Assembly: GCA_001643675.2 (NCBI GenBank)
Contig: LSRY02000016.1
Coordinates: forward strand, 1,302,001 to 1,366,000
Origin: Monocercomonoides exilis PA203
Lineage: Eukaryota; Protista; Preaxostyla
Length of the DNA: 64,000 bases
Direction of reading: 5' to 3'
The position numbers and the translations under genes were made by a program. Below, piece by piece: positions 1 through 35,562 of the stretch (positions within the stretch are counted from its first letter, which is position 1; each line of letters opens with the position of its first letter). Under the pieces are notes generated by a model, which saw only the letters and a program-made list of their open reading frames with translations, did no database searches and was not told the origin of the DNA.

Positions 1-2
1 GC

Positions 3-3000: not shown

Positions 3001-6000
3001 GCGATTGAAGGAAATGCAGATGTTGTTGTTGAATGCAACGGAGTTATTGAATTTGAAAAAGTGGAGATTTCGATTCCATCATCCTTTGACAATCCAGCAA
3101 AATTTTTCATCTGGACAGGTTCAGATTCAATCAAAGCGAGTCTTGTGTGCTGCTCAATCCATGCATATTCTAATGCTGGAAACAATTCATCATTTGTTCT
3201 GATTTTGGCCACAAAAGGAATTGTTCAGATAGAATCGACAAAGATCACAGAGCTGGGATCGATGCACGAGATAATGAGCATATCAGTTGATTGCAAAGTG
3301 TTGATGAAGAATGCAACATTCGAAGATATTTCTTTGAATGGAGGAAGTGTTTTTGCTCTGGCCGAAACGCGGATATCTGGAGGTGGAAGCAATGCAGCCG
3401 ACGAAGGATGGAACACCATATTTGAGCAATGTGCATTCCTGAATGTGAAGCACAGTTCATTGGACAATCCATCGTTGCTTTGTTGCGGTGAGCAAAATGT
3501 GGCAAAATTGAAAATGCATAATTCGACAATCCGTGATTGTGGATCAACAAGCTCGAATGAAGGGGGAGCTGTATTCTTTGGACTCAGCGAAGGCGGATTG
3601 TTGGAAATCAACCACACAAATGTGACAGAATGCTTCTGCTCGAATATTGGAAGAGGAGGAGGGATGTTTTTGAAATCACAAAGTGTCTCGCAGAAGGCAT
3701 TGCCATTTGTGCTATCGAACATCACATTCCGAGGGAATGCTGCACTGAAAGGGAGAGATGTGTTTGTGAAGTGCACTGACCTTGACTCACAGATAACTGA
3801 ATCACAGTTCCTGATAAATTTTGGGGAGCCATTTGTGAAGGAGCTGGCAATATGGGGATGCACAGCAGACAATTATGAGGATGAAGAGGATCTGTTGGGA
3901 AGAGTGTATGTGTTCAGGAGCGAATTCATATTTGTGTCATCGATTGTGGGGAACAGAAGCGACAGCAAGAATTGTGGGGAAATGAAGAGCGCATGCTCAT
4001 CGCTGAATGTTGGAGTGAGCCACATTATCCCGTCTGATTATTCTCAGCTGTTTGTTTGGAATGAAACAACTTTGACTGGCTCGTGCTCTGCTCAAAAGGT
4101 GACGATCAAGTCGATGGAATCGAATAGGAATGCCGAGATAAAAGTGAGTGAGGTTGAGTTGGCAGGGGAGGAAGTTGTGAGAACTTCGGAATCTGTTCGA
4201 TTTGAGAAAGTATCATTTGTTTTTGATGGTATGTGTAACATTGCCTGCTCGTGCTTAATACACCAACTGAATGGATTTCTCTTTTTGGGATCCGTTTCAT
4301 TTCTGGCTGAGAGTGGATCACTTTGGAATTCACAGAACAATTTAGATTTTTCATTGTTAACTGTTGAGGATGGACTGCTCGAGGGAAGCGAGTGCAGCAT
4401 ATGCAGCTTGCAATTAGCAAAATCAGCGTTTCGTGTGTTGACTTCTGAAAGCGTAAAGTTTCAAGATCTCACAATCAGCAATGTTCAATGCCTGAGCTCA
4501 GTGATAGAGTGTGGAATTAGCCAGAGTGTTAGCATTTCCAAATTGAAAGCAGAAAATACAATTCTGCAAAATGGTTGTGCGATTTCTGCGAAAGAGAGCT
4601 CTTCTTTGCTTTTTTCATTGTCGTTATCATCATTTGCGAACATCAGCCGATCATCATCTGGACCAAGCGTTATTTTCACGTCTCATGCAAAGTCTGCCTC
4701 TGAAATGTTCAACTGTTCATTTTGCGAATGCGCATCAGCATCTGCGAAAGGGAGTCAAGTGGCAATGGTCTCTGCCGATGAGATGATGGTCGATCAGTGC
4801 AAGTTTGAAGGGAATCTTGCTGGTGGTTCAGAGGAAATGAATGTTGCTGAAGAGGGAATCTGCGAATGGAACGGCTCTGTTGTTGATTTCTCTGATTGTG
4901 TTGCTGAGATAAGAGATGCAACAGTTTGCGACTCCTCGAAAGGCGGGTTGACAGCGAGTGGCGGTGCTGTGACGATTGAAGCATGCGATTTCAACAACAA
5001 TAATCCATCTATTTTGCACTACCCATCGGTTAGACGGAATATTGTCTGCTCAGATTTTGGGGTTGTAGATGTGATGAGTGTGAAAGGAGGAGATGGGCTG
5101 CTGCCAAACACATCATTATGGATCTTGGATAATGAATGCACGATGAAAGGGATTGCTGGAGAGAGGCCTTCTCCTTTGTTCATCCCCACAATAGAATCAG
5201 CAAAGATAGATAAGAAAGGAGACGAAGTTAGATTGTATGTGAAAGGCACATTGTTGCTTCCTTGCAACGTGGGTTTGAAGTTGAGTCTGAGGAATGGAGA
5301 CGAAGAGCGTGCGGAAAAATATGATTTTGATGAGTATGTGAACGAGAGTGTGATAGCTGCAGATATTTCAAGCTCAACTATTGGAGAAGAAGAAAATGCA
5401 GAAGCATCTGTTGCTCTTCTTTTTGGTAATGAGAAACACAAATGCGAAACGCAACATTTTATTCTGAAAAACAAAAGCGAAGCTCAAAGAAGCGGAAATG
5501 ACAAACTTGCTGAAGGAGAAATGAAAGAAAGATCGTTATGGTCGTTGATTATTATTGTAATATTTGTCGTTTTATTTTTGATTGTTCTGATTGGATTTGT
5601 GATATTTGTCGTTCGATGGAAGAAGGTGAAGAATGAAGCAGAAGATCTGAGAGAGATTGTGAACGATAACATCAGAAAAGATCCGAAGGCATTTGAGATG
5701 GTGACGATGGAGATGTCACCTGAGGAGCAGTGGAGGAGAGCAGAGAATGAGGCAGAGAAGAAGAATGATGAGAGGATGAAGAAGAGAGTGTATGAGAAAA
5801 GCTTGGGTCATTCAGAGTCATCAGAGCATTTGTTGAGTGAGAGTGGATCGACTGAATACATTCTTGGAAAAGACTCAGACAAGATTCCTGAATGGGCATT
5901 GGAGAAAGATGAGGAAGAGGAAATTCGAAAGCGAACACCATCGCCATCTATCTCATCCACTTCAACAACAGACACTTCAGACACAGATTCCACTTTTGTT

Positions 6001-6876
6001 CGAGGAGAGGATCTGTGCCCCACCACCTCATCAATGTCCAATCTGGTGGATGCGATGGCGTGTTCATCCCCTCATGAGAAGCTGATTGTGGATCTGAGGG
6101 ATTCTTTGTTCATGCTGCTTCATGGAAGGAACAAGACAAAGGAGATGGCGATTGGGAGTTTGAAGGAGAGGGAGATGACAGCTGCTCAGATCCTGTTCTG
6201 GGTGGCTAATCTCGCCCTCCACTCCTTTGATGAAATGGAAAATGAGCTTTCCTCTTTGGTCAATCTCAGTCCCCACATTGTGCTGTTCTCGGAGCACATG
6301 GTCATCTGCATTGCCCTCCACTCCGACTGCTCCTCAGACTCTGACACTTCCTCCATCTCTTCAACCTCCACCATGATCACATCTTCCTCTGATGTTTCTG
6401 TGAAGAGCGAGAGATTCACAAAATCACCTCCTCCTTCATCTGCCTTTGAGGATGAGGATGACAACAGAAAAGAGTGTATGAGGTGGAAGGCGCCAGAGCT
6501 GCTGATCAGCAAGAAGATGGGAGCAACAAAGGAGTCGGTTGCCTTTTCGATTGGGATGATGCTGTGGGAGTGTCTGACGCTGAATATTCCGTTTGGGGAG
6601 TATGAGGCAGAGGTTGCTGGACAGAAGATTGTGAATGGAGAACGTCCTGATCTAGAAAGAGTAGGTGGGAGCAAGTGGAAGGAAGCTGTGAAGGCATGTG
6701 TGTCAAGCAGAGCATGCGATCGGCCGACGCTGATGAATGTGAAGAGGGCATGCATTGAACATTTTCCAGCGGATGCAACAGTGATGACAGTGCCTGATGC
6801 AATTGGGGTATGTTTGAGTGGCGGAACAAATGGCAATAGAGAAAGCAAGGATAGGATTGGAGAAGGCTCGATATGA
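3..6876 (+). CDS. Large single-pass membrane protein: Cys-rich GGA[ILV]/FxxN repeat ectodomain, TM helix and kinase C-lobe-like (pseudokinase) tail; 5'-truncated by the window edge and frameshifted near 2400-2418
   Basis: The frame is open from base 3 (TADGCGSEISLFGGGFM). ORFs 51..2420 and 2350..6876 continue the same repeat architecture (GGG[IL]..N.A..G.D[LIV]F; CG....PC). TM segment LWSLIIIVIFVVLFLIVLIGFVIFVV is followed by RWKK. The tail has RWKAPELL and FSIGMMLWECLTLNIPFG (kinase subdomains VIII-IX). No introns seen. Confidence 0.85.
5632..6642 (+). repeat. 1011-bp cassette near-identical to 34321..35331
   Basis: Offset is 28689 at both ends, so no net indel. I count 15 amino-acid differences in 337 codons. 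Confidence 0.95.
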
Positions 6877-7415
6877 TAGATGCCCAAAGAGATGATCAAT
6901 TACTGAAAATGAATAGAGGGAATTCAAGACAAAATAAAGAAACTGATGACTGGCAGCAGAAAAAGGAAGTGCAACAGTTTTGAGCAATATCACCCAAGAT
7001 CATTTTTCGTTTTCATTTCTTTCGTTTAATTTTCATAGCGCTTTGAGGAATATATTCCATTGATGCTGTTTGATGAGCTGTATTTGTCATATTTCTTTGA
7101 GAATGACAATTGCAGCACTCCTTCATCAAATTTTTGTTTGAATTGTTCATTTCAGAATGATAGGTTAAAAAAGAAAAAAGAAAAACCTTGTAATTCATTT
7201 ATTGGCTTTTTATACGCAAGATTTCAATAATTGGGAAAAGCGGCAATTATTTGCCGGGTGTATTTTTGCTTTATGTTGTTCGAAAATTAATGAATTGGAT
7301 GACAAAGAATGAAAGGATTGCCTCAAATTCAGAAATCTTTTGCAAAATTTTTTCAGTATTTGTTTGGAGCCTTTTTGGAAATTAAGAACAAAATATGTCT
7401 TCTTCTACTTCTTCT

Positions 7416-7449
7416 AAAAAAAAAAAAGGGGGGGGGGGGGGGGGGGGGG
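7416..7449. repeat. A12 followed by G22 homopolymer tract
   Basis: Read directly from the sequence in an AT-rich intergenic region. Confidence 0.9.
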
Positions 7450-7607
7450 AATCACTTTCGCATGTTTTCAGCTAAAAAATATGGAAAATAAAAATAATTT
7501 ATTGCATTTGGTACGAAAATTTTAGCTTTTAAAAATTTGTTCCATTCTTCACCTAAAAAAGTTTTTTCGATATTTTATATTTTCTTTATTCTTTTAACAA
7601 GGGAATG

Positions 7608-7790
7608 ATAGACTTATTATGAAAAGGTTGTTGAAAAAGTTTGGAACAAACCGTTTTTTATTCATAAATGAAAGAATTTTGCCCCATTTTTATTTAAATA
7701 AAATGAATTATATTTTTATTAATGGGTATTGTTTTAGGAAATGCCACAAAATATTAATTTCTCTTTCAAAATGAATTATTGATTTTTCAC
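7608..7790. repeat. Degenerate dispersed repeat, inverted copy of about 42970..43155
   Basis: atagacttattatgaaaaggttgttgaaaaagtttggaacaaaccgttttttattcataaatgaaagaattttg aligns with the reverse complement aagactcataatgatatgaagttggaaatatttgttccaaaacatggttttttttcacaaatgaaattatttcg. Similarity continues for about 100 bp more. Confidence 0.55.
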
Positions 7791-9074
7791 AATATTCCTT
7801 CGTATTGCGATCATAAATGTTCATTTCACTCATCAGCAAATATGTTTGTTATAGGAACATCACTGTTTATTTTATATCCCTTTATAATAACAATGTGATG
7901 GAATATTGTGAAATTTTTAAAAATAATGCTAGGTGGTAATTGAAATTTAGTGATCTTTCATTAAAAAAAATACCCATATCAAAAATTAAAACATGAAAAT
8001 GAGTGATTCTTTTTTGATGTTTATTATTTTTGAAAAATAATTATCTTTTCGAATTTGTGTGAAATATTCAAGGAAATAAGCCCCCAAAAAAGAATGAGAA
8101 TTTTTGAAGAAGTGTGAAGAAAATTGAGCTTGTTATTCAATCCAATGAAAAGAACTCCATCAGAAAATATTTTATTGTCTGAACTCAACTATCGCAAAAA
8201 CACATTTTTCTTCAGAGAACTTGAAAAGGGCATTTTTTTTTGAAAAATCGCTTTTGTTAAATTTTGAAAATAAATTGCCCAAATATAAACATATGGGGGT
8301 ATATACGGACTTTCAAGCTTTTATTGCACAAAGCATAAAAAAATTGCTTCGTTTATAACATTAAATAACTTAATCAAATTTTGAAATAGATTTCATTTTC
8401 ATATCCGTAAACATGTGTTATTGAAATCAAAACATGAAGTTTTCCAACATTTCACGAATGCCAAAAAATGGATAAATTTTTATTGTATTTAATGATTAAA
8501 AAAAGTCAATAAAAAGTGCATAATTATTCTATGAAAATGCCTGAAGCTGAATATTTTGCTACATTTGACTATCATTTCAATTGAGTGGGTTGATTGAAAA
8601 CAATTCACAATATTCATTATTTTTGATTATTCCAATGCAGTTGCATTTATTTGCTTGTTAAATATTAAGATATCAATTTGCTTAATGATGAAAAATAAAA
8701 ACCATAATTATTAATTCTGGCGAATAACATAATTTTGGTTTTTCCCTCTTTTTTAAAAAGATGCATTCGAATGAATATGAAGTCAGGCTTGAAAAATAGA
8801 GAGGAGCATTTTTTTTATAAAACAGAATTACATTCGCAAAGTTATTCAACTCAATAAAATATGTTGATTATTGTTAATATTCATTTTTAGAAGTGAAAAA
8901 GTAACTAAATACTTATTTATTAAAGAGAAAAGTCATAATTTATAAAAATATATATACTTAAAATCAATGAGTGAAACAATGAATTAGTTTTTTCCAATAA
9001 ACACAAAAGATCATTAATATATCAAAATAAATGCGGAGTTGCATAAATAAATTAATAAATAAATAAAAAAAGAA

Positions 9075-12000
9075 TTATCTTCCCTGTGCTTCAACTATTG
9101 GTTGTGGAACCATGCAAGGCTTGATGTTCCAGATCTTCTCTGAATAGTCGATGATGGAACGATCAGAAGAAAACTTATCCATTCTGATTGAATTCAAAAT
9201 TGCACGTCTGCCCCATTCATCCTTCTTTGCCCAGTCTTCTTCAATCTTCTTGTGTGTCTTGATGTAATCCTCGAAGTCCATTGACACCAAATAGTGGTCA
9301 CTGTTCCGAATGTTGTCGGTGAATTGGGCGAAATCAGCTGGATTTCCAAATTTCCCTCCATCAATTGCATCAAGCGCAGCAGTAAGTGATGGTGGGAGTG
9401 TATATGATGGAGAATGCCTTCTTGCACGTGCACCTTCAATTTCTTCTGCTTTAAGTCCAAAGATGTATGCCTGGTTCGCTCCAATCTCCTCCACAATTTC
9501 GATGTTGGCTCCGTCCCATGTGCCCACAAGCAGAGCACCGTTCATGCAGAACTTCATGCACGAGGTGCCTGATGCCTCATAGCCTGCAGTGGATATCTGC
9601 TCCGAGATATCAGCAGCAGGGATGATGATTTGGGCAAGCGAAACACAGTAGTTCGGGATGAACACGATCTTCAAAGCATCCATAATAGACTCGTCCTTGT
9701 TCACAACGTTTCCAACGGCGCAGATCAGTTTGATTGTCTTCTTTGCCATGAAATAGCCGGGTGCTGCTTTGCCACCAAAGATGACAACTTTCGGTGGGCG
9801 TTTCAAAAGTTCAGAGCGACTCAGTTTCTTCAGCTCCAAGTACTCATAAATGCACCTCAGGATGTTCAAGCTCTGTCGCTTGTATTCGTGCAGCCTCTTC
9901 ACATGCACATCAAAGATCACATTGTCTAATTCTGCTCCATGCCTCATCAAAACACCTGCAGCAGCCGGGTTGCCTTGTCCGCACTCACGCTCAATTACCT
10001 CAACCAGCTTCTCCTTGGCCATCCTCTTTACGTTCCAGAATTGATCAATAAATGGTTTGTTGATCATTCCCTGACTCTCAATGCGACGCAGCACTTTGTA
10101 TGCCACTGTCCATCTGCTTCCAACTTTGGAGTCATAAAGCTTAGCAAGTGGTGGGTTGGCCTCAAGCAACCAACGACGCTGTGTAACACCATTTGTAACG
10201 TTGAGGAATTTATCCGGGAACACTTCATAAAAGTGCCTGAAGATTGTCGTTTTCAGCAGCTGTGAGTGAAGCTCAGCCACACCATTCACTTTGGAGGAAG
10301 TGACAATGGCAAGATTGGCCATACGAATGCACTTTACTGGATATTCCTCCACAATTGACAGTTCTCCCATGTATGCATCGTATTTCCCTTTGATTGACTC
10401 AAGGAATACGTGGTTGATGAGATAGATGATCTCCAGATGTCTTGGCAGCATCCTTCCGAGAAGATCGACTGGCCACTTCTCCAGTGCTTCTGGCAACACA
10501 GTGTGGTTAGTGTATCCAAAGCAACCTTGTGTGATCTTCCATGCTTCGTCGAATTCCAACATCTTCTCATCCATCAAAATGCGCATAAGCTCCGGAATTG
10601 CAAGAACTGGATGTGTGTCATTGCATTGCATCATGACGGCTTCTGGAAGGTCGGAATATGGTTTTCCTTGTTTCTCAAAGCGGCGGATGATATCATGCAG
10701 CGAAGAACATACAAAGAAGTATTGCTGACGAAGACGCAATTCCTTACCGGCTGTGAACGCGTCGTTTGGATACAGCACTTGAGTGATCGTCTCTGCCTGC
10801 TGCTTCGCTCTCACTGCATCATCGTAGCTTCCTCTGTTGAACGATGATAAGTCAAATTCGTGTGATGGAACAGACTCCCAAAGACGCAAGTTAATTGTGT
10901 TCAATGTTCTGAATCCTGCAATTGGTACATCGTATGCACGTGCAATAACTTCTTCTCCTCCAACCCATCTTTTTCTGATAGGTCCAGATTCAATTTCGTA
11001 GTTTTCTGTCACTTCAACCCACTCAAATTCGTCGTCTTCATCGTTGCTGGCTGAAGAAGGAACTGATGATGGTGATGCACCAAATTGTGCACGAGGAAGT
11101 GGTGCTGATTCAGCTGACATCATCTCAGATGAGAAACTGCTCGGTGAAAGAGCAAAGGAAGAAGAAGAAGAAGCAGATGCTGAGGATGCTGTCTTTCTCC
11201 TTCTTTCCATGCGCTTGCGAGCTTCCACTCGCTTCTCTTTGTACTCTTCAACGTGTCCAAAGAATCTGACTTTGTATTTTACATCGTTTCTCTGGATTTC
11301 CCATGGGCAACCGTTCTCAAGCCAGTAGTCTGGCAATTCAATTTGATCGCCGTCAGGAGAGATCTTTTGTTTGAACATTCCGTACTGATAGCGAAGTCCG
11401 TAACCCCACGCCGGCAGGCGCAATGACGCCATTGAGTCCAAATAGCATGCAGCAAGACGCCCAAGACCTCCATTTCCAAGTCCCATATCTATTTCCTGCT
11501 CAGCAACTTCTTCCATCTTCAATCCGATCTGTGAAAGAACACTTGTGTATTCATTCATCACAGTTAGAGACAACAAGTTTGAACGCAAAAGTCTTCCAAT
11601 CAAATATTCGATGGAAAGATAATAAAGTCTTTTGGGATTCTTTTCGTGAAAGTGACGATTTGTATCATTCCACAATTCTGTTGATAATAAATTGCAAATT
11701 TCAAGAAAAGTATTGTAATTTAAAACTAAAAAAATTAATCACACCAATTAATCGATCACGCACGCTAAGCGCTGTTGCGTGATATGCCACACCCAAATCG
11801 AAAGACCATTTTGTCCTTGCACATCTGAATTCAACATGATCGCAAATAGATTGAAGAATTGATTTGGTATCTTAACAATTCGTGAATGAAAATTCATTTA
11901 TACAACGTTTGGATCATCAAAAAATTTAAAAATCACAAAAAGAAAATTGACAGTTAAACCATTTTGCAAAAATTGTCTTCTCATTGAAAAAAGAAGATTA

Positions 12001-12262
12001 AGCTTTTGCTTTTCCTCTGGGTTATCTCGGTTAGCAATTGTATTTACACGCGGCAACAATCTTGTACCAGAAGATATTCTTGTTAAGAATCCTTGACTTG
12101 GGGAAAAGGATTCAGATGTATCAGTGGCTCTAAATTCTAAAACATACAATAAAACATGCAAGATCGAGAATATATACACAAGAAAATACTTTCATCTTCT
12201 TCAGGAACTCGCTGGCGTTGTCGTTGCGCAATGCTGTCGGCGTAAGAATACGGAGTTGTCAT
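9075..12262 (-). CDS. PYG: Glycogen/starch phosphorylase (GT35), about 992 aa, 4 exons (12262-12190, 12136-11960, 11870-11745, 11677-9075)
   Basis: Motifs: GLGNGGLGRLAACYLDS, GYGLRYQYGMFKQ, NDTHP, YTNHTVLPEALEKW, KRLHEYKRQ, FGGKAAPGY, the PLP site EASGTSCMKF, and FSSDRSI. GT-AG introns restore the N-terminal ATALSVRDRLIELWNDT. Confidence 0.95.
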
Positions 12263-12419
12263 TTCGATCGTTCGATCTCATAATTAATTTGTGATTTTTC
12301 CGAACGAAAAAAAGAATGACATATCGTATTATGTAATGTGTTCAATTTATAGGAACAAATGTCTCGAATGAAAAATATATCTTTGTGGTATAAGATCAAA
12401 AAATTTCTGTCAAATAAAA

Positions 12420-18235: not shown

Positions 18236-18572
18236 ACACTAAACATTCACTATTTATAAAGGCATTTCTATTTATGTGTTTTGAAGGAGGATTTTTAAAT
18301 ATAATTTTTCCACATTTCGCGTTTTCATTCTCTTTCTATTTTCTTATAACAAACTTCTTAAATTCAAAACTACATAAGTATGCGTGATAAATACAAGATT
18401 TTCATTTTTTTTAGAAGTGTAATCTTTTTTCAGGAAAGATCAAAAAAATTTTTTTATAAATTCTTTGCTCTTTCAAAAGAAAAACGTGGTTCAAATTTAC
18501 TGTTTTTCTAAAACTCTTTATTATTTTAATTTGTTGATACAAGGAGCAATTTTTCCCCTGGACTATTGATTT

Positions 18573-20894: not shown

Positions 20895-21163
20895 TATTTC
20901 GCACATTTTGAATTTTGATTATCTATTAAGTATTTGCAAATGAAATAGAAATATTTAGTCAACGTATCTGGAAAATGTTATATTAATTTTTATATTAATT
21001 TTTTTATGATAGAATGTGAATTTTAAACTGTTATTCAATTAACTATGTTTTTTGTTAACCCATAACTAAGTTCTCTGTTTTTAAGTTTTTCAAAAAATTA
21101 ATAATATTTTGAGCACTTTCAATCTAATTGCTTTTCTTCGAGCAGAATCTGTGAACAACAAAT

Positions 21164-24100: not shown

Positions 24101-26265
24101 AGATGGATGAGAACATTCTCTTTCTCCAGACGCAGCTGCGGCAGGCGACGGAGGCAGTGGAGCCGCTGCAGCGTGAGAAGAACCTGTTGGAGAGCCAAAA
24201 TGCGGAGACGAAAGCGGCTGTTGACCAGCTGCGTGCCGAATCGAGGCGACGAGATGCGAAAATGAATGAGCTGGAAGAGGGGATCACAGACAAAGAAGCG
24301 GTGATTTTGCGGCTGAAGAAACAGAACCAAGAACTGGACAAGTTCAAGTTTGTGTTTGACTACAAAATCAAGCAGCTGGAGAAGACAATTGAACCAAAGA
24401 ACGAGCAGATCGCGTCTCTGGAGGAGCAAATTCAAGAAATGGATACCGAACTGGAAAAGGAACACCGAAAAGCGACGACTATGCAAATTGAGCAGCGGGA
24501 GAAAGAGCTGCGGATGAGTGCGCTTTCGCAGGAGAACGCGGGGCTGAAGCGGAGTGTGCACGACCAGCAGCGGCTGAGCGACCGCTTCTGCCACGACTTG
24601 TCAGCATTGGTGGCGCAGGAGCCTGGAACATGGGCTGCGGAGCTGAGGAAGATCTACGAAGAGTTTGTGGGGCCAAACTACGTGAAGACGATATCGCCGG
24701 CGGGGGATAGTTTGAAAGCAGAGGAATTTGCAAGACAGAAGGAGTATCTGGATATTTCGCTGATGTCGCTGAAGACGGGGCTGGCGAAGGCGAAAGAGAG
24801 GGGCAAAAGGGAGATGCGACTGAAACTGGATGAGAACATTCTGCTTATTGATGAAGTGAACCAGCTGCGCAGGGAGAAAAGAGAGTTGCTGTCGAAGATC
24901 AAAAACCTGAAGCAGGAGATTGTGAGTGTGCAGACAGCCATCACGCGGAAGCGGCTGCAGCACATTGCAGAGGAGAAGACGATGAAGCTGCAGCAGCACT
25001 TAGAGGCGGAAGGTGTATTGGCGAGGGAAGCGCACATTGCAGGCGATGGAACGCGTCCGAAGGGAGAAAATGCGAAGGGGAAACTTCACATGGGCTCGAC
25101 AAAGGGAGTGGTGGAGACGATGGAGGCGAAGACGCGGGTGGCGCAGCTGCTTGCGCTGTTGGAGGAGAACACACAAGAAATGAAGCGACAGGAAGAAGAA
25201 CTCAATATGCTTAGAGAGTTTGTGTCTGAGCTGGCTGGGAAAGACGCATCGGGCGAAGGAGCGTCAGAACAAAGTGAGGTGGAGTTATCGGCGATTGCGG
25301 CGGAAGCGCGCTCTTTGCTCAGCACACGCACACAGCCATCACCTGCATTTCCTTTCACATCAACTAACAGATCACTTCAATCTGCAATGCCTTCATCGTC
25401 ATCATCTTCTTCTTCTTTTACACCTTCTCGTTTTTCTTCAACCACTTCTTCTTCTCTCCTCTCTCCACAGCCTTCACAGCGGCACCCCACTTCGCTCTAT
25501 CCGCGTGCCCAGACGTCGATGGGGCTGAGAAGGCCGCTCCAGACACGTGTTGGTTTCACTCCACCTCCCACCGCTTTTGCCCCGCGCCGTGTCACTTCAC
25601 AGCCTCGCCCTCATTCGTCAATGGGGCTGTCTTCATCTTCATCTTCTTCGTCGTCGTCGTCTTCTTCTTCTTCTGCTTTAACTGCAAACACCTCATCATC
25701 CACCTCATTCACTCCTCTTATCACTTCACATTCTCCTTCGCTTTCTCCTTCTCCTTCTTCCGCTCGCTCATTTCGCTCCTTCTCAACAAGATCTCCTTCT
25801 CCTCGCCTGCGTCCCTCCACTCCGCCGAGAAAGCTGCAGCAGTCGCCTCGTTTTGGCTCAACCTCACTTCGCCCTCAGATTCAATTGGACGTTCCTTCAT
25901 CAGCAGACACACTTCAGACAGAAGATCCTATGACACCTCATTCACCTCACACACCTCATACACCTAATGCACATAATACCCCAAATACAACGAATACCCA
26001 GAATATCCCGAATATCACGAATTCCTCAAAGATGCCTTCAACTCCTGTGTCTTCTTCTCGAAATGCGTCTCTTGCTGCTCAGTCTCGCCGCTCTCCAAAC
26101 ACAGCACTTCTTGGCTCGCAGCAAACACCTGTGAATTATAGCCATTCTGCCAGACCATCTTCAGCAGCAAAAAGAGTTTCTCCGAGAATATTTTCTCCGG
26201 TGCAGCCGTTTTTGCGGAAGCAGGCAAATTCTACGCAGGGGGTGGTTGAGACAGATATTGTTTGA
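21164..26265 (+). CDS. CFAP57: Cilia/flagella-associated protein 57 (WDR65), about 1680 aa, 2 exons (21164-21213, 21273-26265)
   Basis: WD40 repeats (FHSGSITGMSV, ATCATDGWVRLWN, SLSLHPTG, AGTDGAVYQW), then a coiled coil with the CFAP57-like segments LKKQNQELDKFKFVFDYKIKQLEKTIEP and ENILLIDEVNQLRRE. Ser/Pro-rich tail. A phase-2 intron supplies an ATG start. Confidence 0.9.
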
Positions 26266-27726
26266 TTGAAGCAAAATGGAAAGTTGTCAAAGATAATGAA
26301 ACAAATTACAAGTAAAAAATTAAAATTTATTGATTATAATTAAAACAGTTGAAGGTTTTATTATTTCTTATTCGAGCACTTTGGTAATATATTAATATTG
26401 GAAATTAAAGAAATTATCAAATTTTAAGATTGTTAAGCAAATTTTTTTTTAAAATATTTTTTTTTATTCTTTTATAAATAAAAAATTCTTTCACTCAAGC
26501 TACAAAAAAGATGAAGATCATATGCCAACTTTTATGTTATCGTGTTTGCATTTTCTAAATTTTGAATTAACAATCAATTTTTTAATCGCATTTGAAATAA
26601 ATTTTTATTTTTTATGGTTTTTGTTGAAAGATGAAACCGTGATTTATCATTGAAAGTAGCAAGAATAGATTGGGTTTACACAAGACATGAATATCCATTT
26701 TAATGACTAACACTTTATTCTGTTTTCATTGGTTTTAAATTCATTTAAGCTGTGAAAAATTTATTTCATTTTATAGTGTCATTTCTGGGTCATAAAGTCT
26801 TGATGAATAGAATCGTTGAATATTTTGCCCTCAAAATTCATCATTCGCACGTTAGCTTGAACATTTACAGTTAATCGTGAAATTATTACAAAGAGCGATG
26901 GAAAAATGGAAAATGATGATTAAATCGCAAATGCATCCACAAGTGGGATGCAGATTGGTGTGACATACCTTCCTGCAATTTTTGAACAATGTTCGTCATT
27001 TTGCTTTGAAATGCAAATGGCTATATCTTTCTGTGATTTTTATTCAATATTTGATAATGAAAATTGCATTAATCTCTCCGGGAAGGCATATAAGTGCATC
27101 AAAAATGCTTGTTCATTTCATGAAGCATCTTATTAAATTTCATAAGAGCGCAGCATTTGGCATTATCACAGAAAATTTGTTTGGATGAATTACAAACTTC
27201 AAATATTTGCAAGAAATACCTCTTGCAATTTATGTTTTCCTCAAATTGAAAGAGAAGAAATCTTGTTATTTCTCTATTTTGGCTCCCGTTGTAAAAGAAT
27301 GGAAGTATTTTTGAATCTAGAGTGGAACAATGGAAACCAAAAAGAAAGGAATGCATGTGGGGAGATGAAAGGCATCAAAACAAATTTGCAGGTGTAAATA
27401 TGTACAAAGGAGTGTGCTTGTTAGCAAATACAATAAAATGGATAGAGAAATCATTGTTTTCTGCAAGAGTTTGATCTTGAAATTGCTGAAGATTGATGTT
27501 AAATTATTATTTTGAAATATTTTCAGATGAGCTCTTCACATTCAAGTCAGAAATTGAAGAATGGTTGAAAAGAGTGTGTTGAAAATTTTAACTGAATAAC
27601 AGCCAACTACATTTCTTACCATTTGAAACTAAAAAGTCTTTCTCACAGATCAATGTTCCCCATTAAGATTCGTAATTATGATCATGCCCTTAATCAAAAA
27701 AAACGGTGAGAATGTTCAGAGAAAAA

Positions 27727-30700
27727 ATGAAATTTCTCTTTATCGTGATTTCAATGTGTTTGCTTTTGTGCAGCAACGGAATATGCAGAGAAGTCTGTGC
27801 GAAGAGTTATGATTTCTCCGAAGACAAAGCATTCGAAGTGTCTGAATTGTCAAAAAATACAAATGATTTCAACAGGAAATCAATGGTCAGTGATTGTTTA
27901 TTTGAAACATTTGAGCAACAACAAAAATGTGTGATAAGCAAAGCAGAATTGTTTGGAGCTTTGACGACTGATTGTTCTTCACTTTTGAGACTTGAAAATT
28001 CAACACTGAACTTATTGAATATCAATTGCAATTGGGATGAGAAATCAAGACTTTCAGAAATTGACAGCAGTTCGTCATTGTTTCTTGCTGATTGTGATAT
28101 TCATCGAGAGGATTTGACAACAAGAAGTTTTATCGAATCATCTGGCACTCTAATTTTATCAAACGTGTCAATTGAATCAGGCATCCATGAAATGAAACAG
28201 ATTTATCCGTTGGCTGAGATGACTGGAAATTCTTTTCTGTCTGTTCATCACTGTATTTTCACATCTATTACTGTGGAATCTACTTCCATGCTGTTTTCTG
28301 GAGTCACTTCGTCGGTAGATATTTCTCAAAGTGTCTTCAAGAACATCACTAAAGCACCGCAAGATGCAAACAAAGAAACAGCACTTCAAAGAGATGGAAA
28401 AGTTGGAAATGTTAAAATTGAAGGATGCATGTTTAATTTCTGTGATAATCCTTATTATGGAGCAGTTGTCTTTCCTTCTTCTGATTCGTTTGCGATGACC
28501 AACTCTTCGTTTAATTCCTGTATGAATTATCGAAATATCGAAATGAACAGATCGTTTTATGAGAAGCAAACATTTTCCTCTGGGAATGTGTCTTTTACTG
28601 ATTGCTTCTTTAAATGTTCATCAAATGAAAATGGAGGTGCGTTAAATGTTGATGGAGAATCGACAACGTGCAGTATTTTGCGATGCCATTTTAATGAATG
28701 TTCGGTGAATAATACAAATAATTTAGCAACTGGTGGATGCATTTCTATTCATGATGTATTAGCAGTGAGTTGTGTGGATTCAAATTTCACTCATTCAAAT
28801 GCTTCATATTGTTGTGGTGGATGCTTTTTTCATAGTGCAAAAAAGATTCAATTAAGATGCTGCATTGTTGCGCATTGCTCTTCAATGTATTACGCAGGAA
28901 TGCAGTTTATTTACACAATTGAAACAGAAGTTTCTTCGTGTTTGATTCATCATTGCAATGGAACAATATTGAATGGAGGAATAGAAGTATTTTCTGCAGA
29001 AGGTTTTATAGTTATTCTTGAGTGTTATTTACACAGTTGTTTTGCGAGTGATGGAGGCGCAATCAATTTTCACCGTGAGGATCGTTTCATACCCTTTGGA
29101 TCTTCAATATCATATTGCCTCTTTTCGAATAATACGGTGACAGAAATAAAATCTGGAAGAGACATCACACTCTTTGATTATTGGATCGGAAAAATCAGAG
29201 ATGAAGATGTTGTTCAGTGCTACTCGACAAGCAATAAACCTCGTGCAACTGATGGAGAAACGAATAAAGACAATTGGCTTCATGATCCTCCAACTTCAAG
29301 TGAATCTTTTTTAGAGTTTTTTGTCAGTTCTCTTAGAGGAAAAGATTTGGATGGATGGGGAGATAGAACTCGACCATTCAAAACTGTTTCATTTTGTTTG
29401 AGCAAGAGATTGGGTCAAAAGATAACTGTTTGCAGAGGGGAATATGAAGAAGGCAGCATCAATGTTGGATCGTTTGAAATGAACCTAATTGGAGATGGGA
29501 TCGACAATTCATTCTTAACTTCGCATAATGTTCATGAAAATCTTGCCTTATTTATTGTTGAAGGAGGAGCACTTGAAGTCATTCGATTTTCACTCGTCCA
29601 CTCAGCGGAAACATCATCTGATGCAAGCCTTCTGGCAATACTTGATGAAGGAAGTGCTAAATTCTCACATTGTGAAATAAAAGGAAATTCAGAGGTTCCA
29701 TCAACGATGTTTTCAGTTCCATTCATGGATCTGAGAAGTGGGATAACAAAAATTGACAACTGTAAATTCCAAAATATTTATCTTCTGGGCAATTCGCTGA
29801 TTCTGACTGCTTGTGTTGGAAATTTGGAAATCAACGGAACATCGTTTTCAGAAATAAAACGAAATGCAGGGAATGGGTCTGTTTTCGAAATAGTGGTTGA
29901 GGATGGTGAGAATATGCAATTGAGTGATCTTGCAATTGAGAAGTGCTCATGCAACCATGGGAATGGAGGAGCAATAAAGGCAGATATGAAGAGTGGAAGT
30001 CGACTGGAGGTTTGTGGCACGAATTTAAGCAATGATGGATTTACAATTTGTTCATGCTCTGCAGAAAATGGGGAAAGTGAGTGGGGAGCTGGAGGAGGAA
30101 TAATGCTGGACTGCCTCCAGGGAGGAAGTGATTTTGTTCTATCATCGATTAGTTTTTCTGAAAATTCTGCAATATTCGGCAAGAACGTATTTGTTGTTGG
30201 ATCAAAATTGGAAGAAGTGTGTTCAGCGTCCAAATTTGCATTTCCGAAGAATGAAACTTCGTTGGATGAGCTGATGGGGTTTGAAAGCAGCGAGATTGGA
30301 GCTGCAGTTCCTCTAATTCTGCTGTGGGAACCGCTGCCCTCTGTTGTGATTGTAAGTGGAAGAGATGGAGTCGATCATATTCGATGCGGATTTGCTATTT
30401 CTCCGTGTAGTACCATTGAATATTCGGAAAAGACCAATTTCAGTTCATTTGATAGAAAAATCAAGATTGCTCCTCCTTTTGAGTTTGATCGTTCATCTGT
30501 TTTAGAAACCAGAGATTGCGAGATTTATGTTGAAGCAAAGGGAACAGTGATTGAGATTGTTGGCGATTCATCGTTACCTGAGAATGGATTTATTGAAACG
30601 AGAATAAACGCAGATTTCTCCAACATCACATTCCAGCTTCCTTCAACACTACCAGATGACAAGCCTTTTCTGTGCTGCTCGAAGAGCGTTTTAAAACTTC

Positions 30701-33700
30701 TCGACTGTGGACTTGGAAAGATCTCATCAGAAGTTGTGTTTCAGTCGACATTTTGCAGTGTTGTCGGAGGACAACTCAACATAACGAACTTTTTGATGAC
30801 GGAATTATCATTTGACTCTTCTTTTGTGCTTTCAATTGGAGAGAGTTCTGATGCAATATTGGATGGAATTAACATGACAAAAGCGAGTGGCACTGACAAG
30901 AGTTTGATTGTCGGAGAGCAGAAAGGGGCAATGGCTGTTCAAAACTGCACTTTTGAATCGTTCGAAGGAAGAGATTGTGCAATAATTATGTGGAAAGGTG
31001 GAAAGGGCTTGAAAGTGAAAAGCACGAATATGTCATCAGTGACAAGGCAAACAGGGAATGGAAGTGGAATCTGTCTGAAATGCAATGATGGGGATGTGTC
31101 AACTGTCAGCTGTGTTGAATGCAAATTTAACCTGTGTGCAGTTGATGAAGAGCAAAGCGGAGGAGGAGGCATATACGGAATTTTTGAAAAAGGATGTGAA
31201 ATAGAAATTGATAAAAGCAGTTTCAAATCATGCAGGGCTCCGGGAATTGTTGAAGGGGAATCAAAAAAGGGCAAAGGAGGAGGATTGCTGCTGGATGTCA
31301 CACATCAAGAAGCAAAATTTGTGATATCTGAGCCAACATTCAAACACAATTCGGCAGAGTTTGGGAAAAACTTATTTTTGCTTGCCAACGATTTGAATAA
31401 GAGTGTCACAAAGGATTCGTTTGTCTTTGATTATAGTAAAATGAAAGACGACAGCACGTTATTTGAGGGAAGCGATGATAATTTTGCAAATGAAGATCTC
31501 TTCCGATTCCTTGTTCAATATACGAGCAATGAGATTCATGTGTCTGCAGGAGGATTAGATGTGTTGAGATGTGGAGCAGAGGATGATCCGTGTCGAACAT
31601 TATGGAGAGGAACGAAACAGATTGATTTGAATGGAGTGAATAAGAAGATTATTATTAGTGAATCCTGTGTTGTTAGCGATCTGTTTGATCTTTCTGACTT
31701 TTCTGTGAGATCGAGCTCAAATGATTTGGATCGAGCAGAAATGGCTGTTTTGATGTTTGAGAATTTGGATGCTGTCAGAGACAATCCAACAATTACATGT
31801 GAAAAAGATCTTTTATTGAGTGAAATTGTTATTCAAGCCAAAGAAAACTACCAGAGTTTGAATAATGTTTTGCTGTTATGTCAAAATGGGCTTTTAAGAC
31901 TGACACACTGCAAATTTGACTCTTTGGCAACTCCAAACGCTCCTCTAAGTGCATCATTTGTGCGAATAGATTGCGGAAGACTTGACATAAATGAATTGAA
32001 CGTTGAATCAATAAACATTGGAAGGAGCATGATTGTTGTTAATGATTTCAAAGAAATTTCAATAACAGACATTGAGGTCAGATCATGCAATATCAGTGGC
32101 GGGAGTATCTTTGAAACTTCACACTCAAATGAAAGGAGTGGAAACAGAGACAGAGCACGAATAACTGTAACAGATTCTGTGTTTGAGGAGCTGAATGGAT
32201 TAAAAGATGAAAGCCGAGCAATGAGCTTCAAAGATACAACAAATATTGATGTTTTGCTTAACGAGAGTGTATTTTCAGGTTGTCAGTCAACAAAAAATCA
32301 GAAAGGAGGAACGATAATGATCGAGTTGGAAGCTAACGGATGCCTGCAGTTTAAGCAATGCACGATTGAAAAGAGCGGTTGCTCCACCGCAAATGGAATG
32401 GGTGGAGGATTATTCCTGAGAACTGATTTGAAATCTGATTTGGACTTTTTGATAGAGCCAACGAAATTTGATGCTAATACGGCTTTTGTTGGCCGAGATG
32501 TCTTTGTGGAGTGTGAAAGTTTAGAGACTCAAATAAACGAGAAACATTTCAGAATCCACTTCAATGAGAGTTTTATTCGGCAAAACGCGTTGTTTGGGAT
32601 TGACAGAAGCGATTTTTCGTTGGAGCCAGTCGATTTGTTGGACTTTATTTTGATATATCAATCAGACACAATCATTGTGTCCTCGGATGTGGGAAACAAA
32701 GGCGAAGATTCAAGAAATTGTGGAACAAGAGCTTTGCCATGTATTTCAATTGGATATGGACTGTATCATTTAACGGATGTTTTTGAAAGCAGACTTATTA
32801 TCGATAAATCAAGTTCAATTGAACAAGAAGTGGAGCTGAAAGGAGTTGTTGTCACTTCTCGAAATCGAAATGTTGCTCAGATACGTGTTTGTTTGTCTCA
32901 AAGAATCAATGGGAATGCAGTTGTCGTGTGTTCTGGTGCAAGTGAAATGCATCTTCTTTCATTTTTGTTTTCATCACCAATATCCTCTCCACATATCTCA
33001 TTTATAAGTGCAACTGAAGATATGTTGATTATTGAGGATTGCCTGTTTGGTTGCGAAAATGAGTTGAGTGATGTCTCGATTCCATTCAGTTTAATTAACA
33101 TCAGCAATGTTGAGTTAATAATGAATAATATTTCGATATCTGATGTGGTATTTGATTGTAATAGTTTGATTTCCATTGAAAAATGTGAAAGAGATGTTAG
33201 CATTGAAAAACTGTTGATAAATAATGTGACAGCAGACAACAATCTGTTATTAATAAGAGGCGACGAATTTCCTTTAAGTGATGAAGCACGCACAATTTTA
33301 ATTTCTGGCTCAAGATTCATGAACACCAATTGTCACTCAAATGTTGGATCCACAATTTTCATACAATCAGAAGCAGCCCCCTTCCAGTTGTGTAATAGCG
33401 TGTTCGATAACTGTAAATCTTCGAGTGAAAAAGGAAGCACGATGAGTGTAAATTCTTGTTTGGATGTGAGTATTTCTTCATGTATTTTCAATGGATACAT
33501 CAATTACAATGAAAGCAATGATGCAATTAATGAAGATGTTTGCAAGTGGAACGGTTCATTTGTTGATGTTGTTGACACATCGATGAAAATGACTGGCACT
33601 TCAATTTCTAATTGCAGCAAAGGAGGATTATCAGTCAGCGGAGGATGGGCACTAATAAGCGAAGGATGGTTCGAGAATAACAATCCTTTGATTGACAAAT

Positions 33701-35562
33701 TTCATTCTGTTCGAAGAAATGTTATTTGTTCTGATGGTTGCCATTTGAATATCAATAATTCGAAAGGTGGTGATGGTGTGAAAAGCAGCCCATCAATGTG
33801 GGTTCTAAATAAAGGGTGCGAATTGGAAGGCTTGCTATCCGAGATTTCATCACCGTTATTTATTCCAGTGTTGAATACAATACAAACACAAGAAGCTGAA
33901 AATTTCATAAAATTAAAATTTTATGGATCGCTTTTTCTTCCATGTAATCTTTCGTTTCAAATTGTTGCAGTGATCAATGGTGTCAATTCCATTGAAACTT
34001 ATGAATTTGAGGAAGATGATTTCACATCTGAAAATGAAATTCATAAAACGATTTCATCGAATCTACTGTCAAGCATTAACAATGAGGCAGAAGTATTTGC
34101 ACATATTTTGTTTGGCGATGCAAATAATCCATCTTCAACTGATTCTTTCATTCTGAAGAACGGAAGTGTGCCTGAACATAAGGGGGACGAAAGATTAGTC
34201 GAAGGTGGAAACGAAGGAAAACTCTCCTGGGCAGTGATCATTGCAATTATTTTTGTTGTTTTGTTTTTGATTGTTTTGATTGTATCCATTGTTGTGACAA
34301 TTCGATGGAGAAGGGCAAAGAATGAAGCAGAAGATCTGAGAGAGATTGTGAATGATAATATCAGAAAGGACCCGAAGGCGTTTGAGATGGTGACGATGGA
34401 GATGTCGCCTGAGGAGCAGTGGAGGAGAGCAGAAAGAGAGGCCGAGAAAAAGAATGAGGAAAGGATAAAGAAGAGGGTGTTTGAGAAAAACTTGGGTCAT
34501 TCAGAGTCATCAGAGCATTTGCTGAGTGAGAGTGGTTCAACTGAATACATTCTTGGAAAAGACTCAGACAAGATTCCTGAATGGGCACTGGAGAAAGATG
34601 AGGAAGAGGAAATTCGAAAGCGAACACCATCGCCATCGATTTCATCCACTTCAACAACAGACACATCAGACACGGAATCCACCTTTGTTCGAGGGGAGGA
34701 TATGTGCCCCACTACCTCATCGATGTCGAATCTGGTGGATGCGATGGCCTGTTCATCCCCTCATGAGAAGCTGATTGTGGATCTGAGGGATTCGCTGTTC
34801 ATGCTGCTTCATGGAAAGAACAAGACAAAGGAGATGGCGATTGGGAGTTTGAAGGAGAGGGAGCAGACAGCTGCACAGATCCTGTTCTGGGTGGCCAATC
34901 TTGCGCTCCACTCCTTTGACGAAATGGAAAATGAGCTTTCCTCTTTGGTCAATCTCAGTCCTCACATTGTGCTGTTCTCAGAGCACATGGTCATCTGCGT
35001 TGCTCTCCACTCTGACTGCTCGTCAGGCTCTGACACTTCCTCCATCTCTTCAACCTCCACCATTGCCACATCTTCCTCTGATGTTTCTGTGAAGAGCGAG
35101 AGATTCACAAAATCACCACCACCTTCATCTGCCTTTGAGGATGAGGATGACAACAGAAAAGAGTGCATGAGATGGAAGGCGCCTGAGCTGCTGATCAACA
35201 AGAATATGGGAGCAACAAAGGAATCAGTTGCCTTCTCGATTGGGATGATGCTGTGGGAGTGTCTGACGCTGAATATTCCGTTTGGGGAGTATGAGGCAGA
35301 GGTTGCTGGACAGAAGATTGTGAATGGAGAAAGGCCAAATTTGGAGATGGTCAATTCGTCATCTTTGACTGAGATCATCCAATCGTGTGTTTCAGAAGAC
35401 ATCTCAAAACGAATCGAACTCACCGTTCTCAAGAGAGAGTTCATCCAGCGGTTTCCAAAAGATGCTGTGATATTCACTGTTTCTGATGCAGTTGATGTTG
35501 ATGAAGACACAGACATCCCAGACAGCAAGCAAGAGCCAACAGTAAGTTTTGAAACGCATTGA
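27727..35562 (+). CDS. Second large single-pass receptor-like pseudokinase of the same family, about 2611 aa, intronless
   Basis: Signal peptide MKFLFIVISMCLLLCSNG; GGAL/GGAI and FSNN/FSEN/FKHN/FDAN motifs; CG....PC modules; TM segment WAVIIAIIFVVLFLIVLIVSIVVTI; same cytoplasmic cassette as the first copy. Confidence 0.9.
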   Translation: MKFLFIVISMCLLLCSNGICREVCAKSYDFSEDKAFEVSELSKNTNDFNRKSMVSDCLFETFEQQQKCVISKAELFGALTTDCSSLLRLENSTLNLLNINCNWDEKSRLSEIDSSSSLFLADCDIHREDLTTRSFIESSGTLILSNVSIESGIHEMKQIYPLAEMTGNSFLSVHHCIFTSITVESTSMLFSGVTSSVDISQSVFKNITKAPQDANKETALQRDGKVGNVKIEGCMFNFCDNPYYGAVVFPSSDSFAMTNSSFNSCMNYRNIEMNRSFYEKQTFSSGNVSFTDCFFKCSSNENGGALNVDGESTTCSILRCHFNECSVNNTNNLATGGCISIHDVLAVSCVDSNFTHSNASYCCGGCFFHSAKKIQLRCCIVAHCSSMYYAGMQFIYTIETEVSSCLIHHCNGTILNGGIEVFSAEGFIVILECYLHSCFASDGGAINFHREDRFIPFGSSISYCLFSNNTVTEIKSGRDITLFDYWIGKIRDEDVVQCYSTSNKPRATDGETNKDNWLHDPPTSSESFLEFFVSSLRGKDLDGWGDRTRPFKTVSFCLSKRLGQKITVCRGEYEEGSINVGSFEMNLIGDGIDNSFLTSHNVHENLALFIVEGGALEVIRFSLVHSAETSSDASLLAILDEGSAKFSHCEIKGNSEVPSTMFSVPFMDLRSGITKIDNCKFQNIYLLGNSLILTACVGNLEINGTSFSEIKRNAGNGSVFEIVVEDGENMQLSDLAIEKCSCNHGNGGAIKADMKSGSRLEVCGTNLSNDGFTICSCSAENGESEWGAGGGIMLDCLQGGSDFVLSSISFSENSAIFGKNVFVVGSKLEEVCSASKFAFPKNETSLDELMGFESSEIGAAVPLILLWEPLPSVVIVSGRDGVDHIRCGFAISPCSTIEYSEKTNFSSFDRKIKIAPPFEFDRSSVLETRDCEIYVEAKGTVIEIVGDSSLPENGFIETRINADFSNITFQLPSTLPDDKPFLCCSKSVLKLLDCGLGKISSEVVFQSTFCSVVGGQLNITNFLMTELSFDSSFVLSIGESSDAILDGINMTKASGTDKSLIVGEQKGAMAVQNCTFESFEGRDCAIIMWKGGKGLKVKSTNMSSVTRQTGNGSGICLKCNDGDVSTVSCVECKFNLCAVDEEQSGGGGIYGIFEKGCEIEIDKSSFKSCRAPGIVEGESKKGKGGGLLLDVTHQEAKFVISEPTFKHNSAEFGKNLFLLANDLNKSVTKDSFVFDYSKMKDDSTLFEGSDDNFANEDLFRFLVQYTSNEIHVSAGGLDVLRCGAEDDPCRTLWRGTKQIDLNGVNKKIIISESCVVSDLFDLSDFSVRSSSNDLDRAEMAVLMFENLDAVRDNPTITCEKDLLLSEIVIQAKENYQSLNNVLLLCQNGLLRLTHCKFDSLATPNAPLSASFVRIDCGRLDINELNVESINIGRSMIVVNDFKEISITDIEVRSCNISGGSIFETSHSNERSGNRDRARITVTDSVFEELNGLKDESRAMSFKDTTNIDVLLNESVFSGCQSTKNQKGGTIMIELEANGCLQFKQCTIEKSGCSTANGMGGGLFLRTDLKSDLDFLIEPTKFDANTAFVGRDVFVECESLETQINEKHFRIHFNESFIRQNALFGIDRSDFSLEPVDLLDFILIYQSDTIIVSSDVGNKGEDSRNCGTRALPCISIGYGLYHLTDVFESRLIIDKSSSIEQEVELKGVVVTSRNRNVAQIRVCLSQRINGNAVVVCSGASEMHLLSFLFSSPISSPHISFISATEDMLIIEDCLFGCENELSDVSIPFSLINISNVELIMNNISISDVVFDCNSLISIEKCERDVSIEKLLINNVTADNNLLLIRGDEFPLSDEARTILISGSRFMNTNCHSNVGSTIFIQSEAAPFQLCNSVFDNCKSSSEKGSTMSVNSCLDVSISSCIFNGYINYNESNDAINEDVCKWNGSFVDVVDTSMKMTGTSISNCSKGGLSVSGGWALISEGWFENNNPLIDKFHSVRRNVICSDGCHLNINNSKGGDGVKSSPSMWVLNKGCELEGLLSEISSPLFIPVLNTIQTQEAENFIKLKFYGSLFLPCNLSFQIVAVINGVNSIETYEFEEDDFTSENEIHKTISSNLLSSINNEAEVFAHILFGDANNPSSTDSFILKNGSVPEHKGDERLVEGGNEGKLSWAVIIAIIFVVLFLIVLIVSIVVTIRWRRAKNEAEDLREIVNDNIRKDPKAFEMVTMEMSPEEQWRRAEREAEKKNEERIKKRVFEKNLGHSESSEHLLSESGSTEYILGKDSDKIPEWALEKDEEEEIRKRTPSPSISSTSTTDTSDTESTFVRGEDMCPTTSSMSNLVDAMACSSPHEKLIVDLRDSLFMLLHGKNKTKEMAIGSLKEREQTAAQILFWVANLALHSFDEMENELSSLVNLSPHIVLFSEHMVICVALHSDCSSGSDTSSISSTSTIATSSSDVSVKSERFTKSPPPSSAFEDEDDNRKECMRWKAPELLINKNMGATKESVAFSIGMMLWECLTLNIPFGEYEAEVAGQKIVNGERPNLEMVNSSSLTEIIQSCVSEDISKRIELTVLKREFIQRFPKDAVIFTVSDAVDVDEDTDIPDSKQEPTVSFETH
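34321..35331 (+). repeat. Second copy of the 1011-bp cytoplasmic cassette
   Basis: Near-identical to 5632..6642. Confidence 0.95.

Follow-up and report, generated by a model that had tools for sequence, protein, structure and literature searches.

We analysed a 64,000-nt stretch of the Monocercomonoides exilis genome (hereafter the window; G000:C10:1302001-1366000, on contig C10 of an 82.3-Mb, 101-contig assembly). An earlier note, made from the sequence alone, had singled out two genes in it for giant surface proteins (A, ending at position 6876, and B, at 27727-35562), which share an almost identical cassette of about 1 kb just after their transmembrane (TM) helix. It is most probable that A and B are two of approximately 970 paralogues encoding giant type I surface proteins with a non-catalytic, kinase-derived tail, and that the patch of identity between them is a recent recombination tract. 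Coordinates given without a contig name are window positions.

Ungapped comparison of the cassettes of gene A (5632-6642) and gene B (34321-35331), both on the forward strand, revealed 63 differences over 1011 nt (93.8% identity), with 15 of 337 residues changed and 45 codons synonymously different, which exactly reproduces the gapless match first described, including its many synonymous changes. Random 1011-nt windows from the two ectodomains, by comparison, were 26% identical on average and 32% at most. This match was the sole nucleotide-level repeat found by blastn within the window (5560-6642 versus 34249-35331, 92.4%), where it reached 72 nt further 5' into the TM helix, and tblastn found no family copy or fragment in the window beyond genes A and B. 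The identity had been described as starting and stopping abruptly, which holds for the 3' edge, after KIVNGERP, but not for the 5' edge, which decays gradually through the TM helix. Outside the cassette, identity in 30-nt in-register windows was 47-77% upstream and 27-57% downstream. The last 70-80 residues diverge again, as the earlier note had it, with a proportion of synonymous differences (pS) of 0.83 and of nonsynonymous differences (pN) of 0.43.

Rather than being a feature of two genes, as first described, the cassette proved to be common to hundreds. A genome-wide search for the codon-degenerate pattern ECxRWKAPE with up to two mismatches returned 971 matches (481 forward, 490 reverse) and 0 for the reversed-pattern control. 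Comparing the cassette DNA with the genome, as the earlier note had suggested, gave 1088 first-look candidates, 40 of which were scored and were 82-100% identical. A protein search with the tail yielded 408 matches, the best 120 of which were all full-length M. exilis MONOS_* proteins with 70-88% identity in the tail, and 130 further short matches, the best 120 of which were likewise all from M. exilis; tail identity across these two sets was 63-88%, and neither contained a relative from another organism. Scanning metagenomes with the tail alignment produced 600 pattern matches, with 0 confirmed by tblastn. The protein and metagenome negatives would not amount to proof that the family is absent from other oxymonads.

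Beta-helix modules and a kinase remnant

Members of the family share one layout, consisting of an N-terminal signal peptide, several modules of ~400 amino acids, a conserved membrane-proximal domain, one TM helix and a tail of ~410 amino acids; in genes A and B the single TM helix is evident from hydropathy. The ectodomain is made up of these internally repeated modules, one of which (gene B, 30019-31221, residues 772-1172) gave an AlphaFold2 model with a predicted local distance difference test score (pLDDT) of 89 and a predicted template modelling score (pTM) of 0.88. Its top Foldseek matches in the PDB were all right-handed beta-helix proteins, at a probability of ~1.0 and TM-scores of only 0.3-0.44, and included PL6 alginate lyases, AlgE4, pectin methylesterases and phage tailspikes. 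Language-model neighbours of the ectodomain fell into clusters with Beta_helix (PF13229), Chlam_PMP (PF02415) and DUF1565 (PF07602), and Pfam searches of A and B at E <= 0.01 returned only kinase families, with no PF02415 or other beta-helix family. The predicted fold of the module is thus a right-handed parallel beta-helix. The two ectodomains had been thought alignable only at scattered motifs, but residues 37-1487 of A align with residues 1172-2598 of B at 43.6% identity, tail included. One candidate for an active-kinase cousin with the same ectodomain, C52:99224, was rejected: its catalytic domain is N-terminal and it does not resemble gene B.

The tail retains only part of a kinase. PK_Tyr_Ser-Thr (PF07714) matched the tails of A and B with E values of 3.7e-7 and 2.5e-8, covering only profile positions 160-257 (in gene A, residues 1369-1465 and profile positions 160-255), and searches of tail sub-fragments, even at E <= 10, found nothing upstream of profile position 160. 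Across the genome, PF07714 matches with the same 160-257 coverage in giant open reading frames are consistent with membership of this family. A profile of 23 tails compared with the PDB recovered the tyrosine kinase-like (TKL) kinases ZAK/MLT and TAK1, plus BTK and MLKL (6vc0), over no more than the stretch between WKAPE and subdomain XI. When the tail was compared with a genuine M. exilis kinase (C52:99224), hhalign aligned only kinase positions 167-253. What is retained therefore runs from the APE motif through subdomains VIII-XI and occupies only the last ~100 residues. Across 211 family tails, a Gly-rich GxGxxG loop, an HRD-like loop and a DFG motif were each found in 0, and a VAIK-like [VIL]A[VIL]K motif in 1, a chance match; by manual alignment, SLxNLSPHIVLF and VICIALHSD stand in the places of HRD and DFG. 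The tail derives from a TKL-type kinase but, having no ATP-binding or catalytic motifs, would be incapable of acting as an enzyme. The 'signalling cassette' of the earlier note is better described as a non-catalytic kinase remnant together with conserved low-complexity segments.

The remainder of the tail comprises a charged juxtamembrane helix followed by Ser/Asp/Glu-rich segments that are nearly invariant in the family; in the 23 tails, a mean of 77% of columns is identical. In gene A, the kinase-like remnant is divided between the cassette, which contains its first half (WKAPE at 6481-6504) along with the helix and these segments, and the divergent C-terminus (6643-6876, stop codon included), which carries the rest, with an 'RPT' subdomain-XI motif at 6715-6768. 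Because the Ser/Asp/Glu-rich segments are nearly invariant, they may represent conserved linear motifs or phosphosites. Since the tail contains no ATP-binding or catalytic motifs, it might instead serve as a scaffold, for docking or as a phospho-acceptor, through which all ectodomains would connect to one shared intracellular machinery. Receptor pseudokinases of animals and plants (such as ErbB3, RYK and BIR2) and MLKL (6vc0) offer a parallel, using a dead kinase-fold domain as a scaffold behind a receptor, but they keep the whole bilobal fold, whereas the M. exilis tail has no sequence-detectable N-lobe or catalytic loop. Complete or near-complete kinase domains were matched elsewhere in the genome, in open frames of 4000-6900 amino acids (C52:244016, C23:935922, C47:332771 and C28:950606), and these giant kinase genes are unrelated to the family's tail.

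In NCBI, family members are named, for example, 'putative Protein tyrosine and serine/threonine kinase'; such names, together with the PF07714 match, make this very probably the published protein tyrosine kinase (PTK)/TKL family of M. exilis. According to PMC6759080 and PMC8767320, that family is the organism's largest, with 332 genes, 320 of them TKL, and its genes overlap unclassified repeats (PMC8767320). Nowhere in the text searched do these papers report a TM helix, a beta-helix ectodomain, lost catalytic motifs, some 970 copies or recombination, and we likewise came across no account of the architecture, of the dead tail or of recombination elsewhere, a Preaxostyla comparative paper (PMC10703272) included. 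The family is thus not wholly undescribed, being very probably already published as PTKs, but its architecture, dead tail and recombination go unmentioned in the text searched. If so, the M. exilis kinome has been overcounted, because the family's proteins lack any catalytic motif, and the largest family, published as 'protein tyrosine kinases', would consist of surface receptors or adhesins. At 6-9 kb per gene, ~970 copies could account for several percent of the 82-Mb assembly, and the family probably explains part of its 35% 'unclassified repeats'.

Selection, related families and possible functions

Selection on the cassette was estimated from an arbitrary sample of 16 copies on five contigs other than C10, which gave a median pS of 0.60, a pN of 0.116 and 72-84% nucleotide identity. 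In close pairs, the ratio of nonsynonymous to synonymous rates (dN/dS, omega) was 0.03-0.16 for the cassette, as against 0.14-0.62 for the membrane-proximal ectodomain, and third codon positions of the cassette vary freely across copies. Given these values of pS, pN and omega, the constancy of the tail across the family reflects mainly purifying selection at the protein level (dN/dS ~0.1). Among 70 proteins, median pairwise amino acid identity was 0.82 for the cassette, 0.53 for the segment comprising stalk and TM helix, and 0.37 for the C-terminus. The earlier note had pictured a ligand-facing part under diversification; we found no sign of positive diversifying selection in the membrane-proximal ectodomain. 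GC content at third codon positions was higher in the tail (0.50-0.55) than in the ectodomain (0.39-0.40; 23 + 16 copies), which is compatible with GC-biased conversion, but the rise spans the whole tail and is not specific to the cassette, and we do not count it as evidence.

Several families in other organisms resemble this one in part. The EhTMKs of Entamoeba histolytica have ectodomains of Cys-rich CXXC repeats and a complete intracellular kinase domain, whereas the M. exilis family has beta-helix modules, retains only subdomains VIII-XI and is roughly tenfold larger. As described in PMC2880585 and PMC2211552, the EhTMKs are likewise a large protist family of type I proteins with variable ectodomains and an intracellular kinase-type domain; many copies are near-identical or truncated, members are selectively expressed, and the family has a role in phagocytosis. 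The M. exilis family is an analogue, not a member, of the EhTMK family.

A second comparison is with the variant-specific surface proteins (VSPs) of Giardia, also a gut-dwelling metamonad, which are encoded by hundreds of genes and in which the ectodomain varies, the TM region is conserved and the cytoplasmic end is invariant. The M. exilis family shares this plan of hundreds of genes, variable ectodomain and conserved TM region and cytoplasmic part. Unlike its ~410-residue tail and beta-helix ectodomain, the VSPs have a five-residue tail (CRGKA) and a CXXC-rich ectodomain, and they are defined by mutually exclusive expression. Chlamydial Pmp proteins and the Pmp-like/BspA-like families of Trichomonas are adhesin-like, with GG[AG][ILV]-type motifs and no kinase-derived tail. 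They share with the M. exilis family right-handed beta-helix, adhesin-like ectodomains and massive expansion in a mucosal protist, but A and B have no PF02415 match at E <= 0.01 and do have a kinase-derived tail.

From this architecture, the ectodomain would be expected to bind ligand, prey or mucosa, and the family would form a repertoire for adhesion or recognition on a shared scaffold. One possible elaboration, which we advance tentatively, is that ~970 mostly functional beta-helix receptors make up a combinatorial repertoire (for bacterial prey, host mucus glycans or immune evasion) on one non-catalytic, kinase-derived tail, with recombination concentrated at the TM helix and tail so that any ectodomain could be recoupled to whichever tail is currently best. 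If true, the family would be a protist counterpart of the expansions of plant receptor-like proteins and animal innate receptors, built on a dead-kinase hub. The family is also tractable for studying how a gut protist recognizes its surroundings and, as a family with a constant tail, variable ectodomains and measurable exchange, for the interplay of conversion and selection in very large families, in an organism that is a model amitochondriate eukaryote.

An alternative function, compatible with recombination, is a coat for antigenic variation like that of the Giardia VSPs, with one or a few copies expressed and the tail used for sorting or switching. The huge dispersed repertoire, the variable outer part, the constant TM-proximal tail and recombination between copies all fit this, as does life in the vertebrate gut (noted in PMC10703272). 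We nevertheless consider it unlikely: the ectodomain dN/dS of 0.14-0.62 in close pairs gives no indication of positive selection in the membrane-proximal part, purifying selection on hundreds of tails suggests that many copies are in use, and the genes are dispersed among housekeeping genes, without dedicated expression sites.

Exchange of segments among family members

Divergence between A and B is far from equal across regions, with a pS of 0.205 in the cassette between flanks at 0.77 (proximal ectodomain) and 0.83 (C-terminus); in a codon-shuffle control, cassette pS saturates at ~0.81. Maximum-likelihood trees of ectodomain, cassette and C-terminus from 23 copies were incongruent and rejected one another (approximately unbiased (AU) test, p 1.5e-3 to 3e-56). 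Within the cassette, the pairwise homoplasy index (PHI) was 0.673, compared with 0.731 +/- 0.006 under permutation, and 0 of 1000 permutations attained the observed figure. Together, the pS contrast, AU tests and PHI bear out the separate history that the earlier note had proposed for the cassette. The three outcomes named there as refutations, namely equal dS in cassette and ectodomain, congruent trees and a cassette identity produced by the assembly consensus, are excluded.

Pairs of different age point to how this history arose. Recent duplicates (ectodomain pS < 0.2) had a higher pS in the cassette than in the ectodomain (0.10-0.36) in 11 of 11 pairs, and deep pairs had a lower one in 212 of 212. 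Because of these two patterns, the cassette can be said to behave as a pool exchanged between genes, reshuffled rather than simply homogenized. For example, the inverted pair L003/L004 (C10:1390209 and C10:1374856) has an ectodomain pS of 0 over ~480 aligned codons upstream of the TM helix and a cassette pS of 0.10, and one of the two tails has therefore been overwritten from a third copy. The homogenization by gene conversion proposed earlier is accordingly supported in part: recombination or conversion holds for A and B, but constancy across the family is mainly due to purifying selection and the cassette is reshuffled. Classical concerted evolution and the conversion of palindrome arms likewise produce incongruent trees, patchy identity and near-identical inverted arms; the M. 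exilis family differs in that conversion mixes the pool without homogenizing it, leaving recent duplicates less alike in the cassette.

Segments other than the cassette are exchanged as well. In loci L003-L013, the stalk and TM helix (~50 codons; 5458-5631 in gene A, 34147-34320 in gene B) move as a segment of their own, independent of both neighbours: genes with ectodomains that are 97-100% identical carry versions of this segment that are only ~60-66% identical at the nucleotide level, and near-identical ectodomains are joined to different versions in L005/L008, L004/L010 and L001/L013. Discrete TM types were seen locally on C10, but a small fixed set of types was discarded because 70 proteins contained 49 stalk/TM clusters. 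The C-terminal 70-80 residues are inherited together with the 3' flank. Gene A itself shares its ectodomain with L013 (92-100% identity), the start of its cassette matches L003/L004 (98-100%) and its C-terminus is unlike both. Correlations between segment identities (r -0.03 to 0.23) were set aside as evidence of recombination, since a star-like family would give the same values.

We propose that strong purifying selection (dN/dS ~0.1) keeps the tail protein ~82% identical while synonymous sites drift, and that copies, being sufficiently alike in the conserved tail, would then frequently recombine at ectopic sites or convert one another. The limits of homology, at the stalk/TM segment and after KIVNGERP, would set the ends of the tracts. 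A single region of C10, between 0.93 and 1.64 Mb, holds all of the 14 best matches to gene A's cassette, which span four deep ectodomain lineages. The 1011-bp tract in A and B would be one recent local event among ~15 linked C10 copies with a similar cassette and four ectodomain lineages.

Three other explanations of the shared patch were considered. Collapsed or chimeric contigs, or short-read polishing of a ~970-copy repeat, could in principle have created it in an assembly made with Canu from Oxford Nanopore Technologies (ONT) reads and corrected with Nanopolish and ten rounds of Pilon with short reads (PMC8767320), and homopolymer-length differences between the arms of the palindrome that contains gene A would be residual errors in the same region. 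This is very unlikely. A and B cannot have been collapsed, because they differ at 63 sites, and copies at 6-22% divergence are easily separated by 150-nt reads. Mis-mapped polishing would equalize palindrome arms, yet L003/L004 differ in the cassette and not in the ectodomain, and the long swaps take in 0.3-1.1 kb of unique 3' flank. Simple vertical inheritance under purifying selection, without any recombination or conversion, would account for the low cassette dN/dS, for the free third codon positions and for the modest identity of arbitrary copies (only 72-84%), but hardly for a low A-B pS between two saturated flanks, for partition trees that reject each other, for the significant PHI or for the excess of synonymous difference in the cassettes of all 11 recent pairs; we regard it as highly improbable. 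Equally implausible is a mobile element or dedicated site-specific shuffling of the cassette in place of homology-driven conversion, for although many pairs have the same 3' boundary, after KIVNGERP, and the published repeat annotation (PMC8767320) overlaps these genes with 'unclassified repeats', comparison of the window with itself found no repeat outside the coding match, 5' breakpoints are graded and vary between pairs, boundaries fall where protein conservation ends, which is the expectation for homology-limited tracts, and nothing recombinase- or transposase-like lies beside A or B.

Several observations weigh against reading the family as non-catalytic surface proteins whose tails recombine. 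The 16 arbitrary copies gave no indication of homogenization within contigs (pS 0.599 versus 0.599), and regional sharing is demonstrated for the C10 cluster alone. For some events, conversion and crossover-type exchange would be inseparable, and some tracts enter the 3' flank. Small patches in a multi-copy region of an ONT and short-read assembly could be polishing artefacts. Ectodomain DNA was sampled over the membrane-proximal ~500 codons only, in 24 copies that were chosen by resemblance to gene A's cassette. The AlphaFold2 model of the tail, built from 23 family tails, reached a pLDDT of only 39 and was unusable for a fold search; the non-kinase verdict, including the apparent absence of an N-lobe, consequently rests on sequence profiles and motifs rather than on structure. 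The function proposed for these proteins is read from their architecture.

Genes A and B in their genomic setting

Gene A begins ~2.3 kb upstream of the window, at about G000:C10:1299699, and was read earlier as a single frame (3-6876), which it is not. The first frame (frame 0; 1-2420 in the window, listed as an open frame at 51-2420) encodes beta-helix modules that are homologous to those of gene B (23-24% identity); it is free of stops from C10:1299699 to C10:1304417 and ends at a stop codon at 2418-2420. The second frame (frame 1; 2350-6876, 1508 amino acids) encodes the rest of the ectodomain, the TM helix (5536-5613) and the cytoplasmic tail. The apparent break between them (2399-2413) consists of two 1-nt differences in homopolymer length, in a G run and a T run, relative to an inverted twin of gene A that is 99.6% identical and reads through.

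Comparison of C10:1284001-1311000 with itself by blastn places gene A and its twin in a palindrome, with arms at C10:1288342-1297511 and C10:1301397-1310545 (9.17 kb, 99.6% identical). Gene A occupies the right arm, which covers 1-8545 of the window, and the 3885-bp spacer contains both diverged N-termini; the twin has an in-frame stop ~85 bp into the spacer. The coding parts of the arms differ by one substitution; the other differences are homopolymer-length indels at 2399, 2413 and 6025 (G, T and C runs), which account for the frame break in gene A and for another in the twin's cassette. These frame-breaking indels may be residual ONT errors rather than pseudogenization, or may reflect real slippage. 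In the 3' flank within the arm (7415-7450), a long A-run is directly followed by a long G-run, with unequal lengths between the two arms.

Inverted pairs recur along C10 and C1. On C1, plus/minus pairs with an identical tail motif lie ~4.4 kb apart (for example, C1:2695/7151, 75990/80428 and 189964/194397), a pattern that suggests many tail-to-tail inverted duplications of family members.

Gene B is a single forward open frame (27706-35562), encoding 2611 amino acids from the ATG at 27727. It comprises the signal peptide, tandem ~400-residue beta-helix modules, the conserved membrane-proximal domain, a TM helix at 34228-34302 and the tail, and its divergent C-terminus (35332-35562, stop codon included) is of the same type as those of L008, L009 and L019. 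Between and beyond A and B lie housekeeping genes at 9075-11675 (reverse), 21109-26265 (forward), 48811-54192 (forward) and 57818-61099 (reverse), and the family is accordingly dispersed among normal genes. Their products are a glycogen phosphorylase, an EML-like WD40 protein, a PH-domain protein and a gamma-tubulin complex component. A further forward open frame of 1818 amino acids (12779-18235) has only a short, N-terminal Hsp70-like match, and its strand is strongly purine-skewed (AT skew up to 0.50, GC skew up to 0.41).

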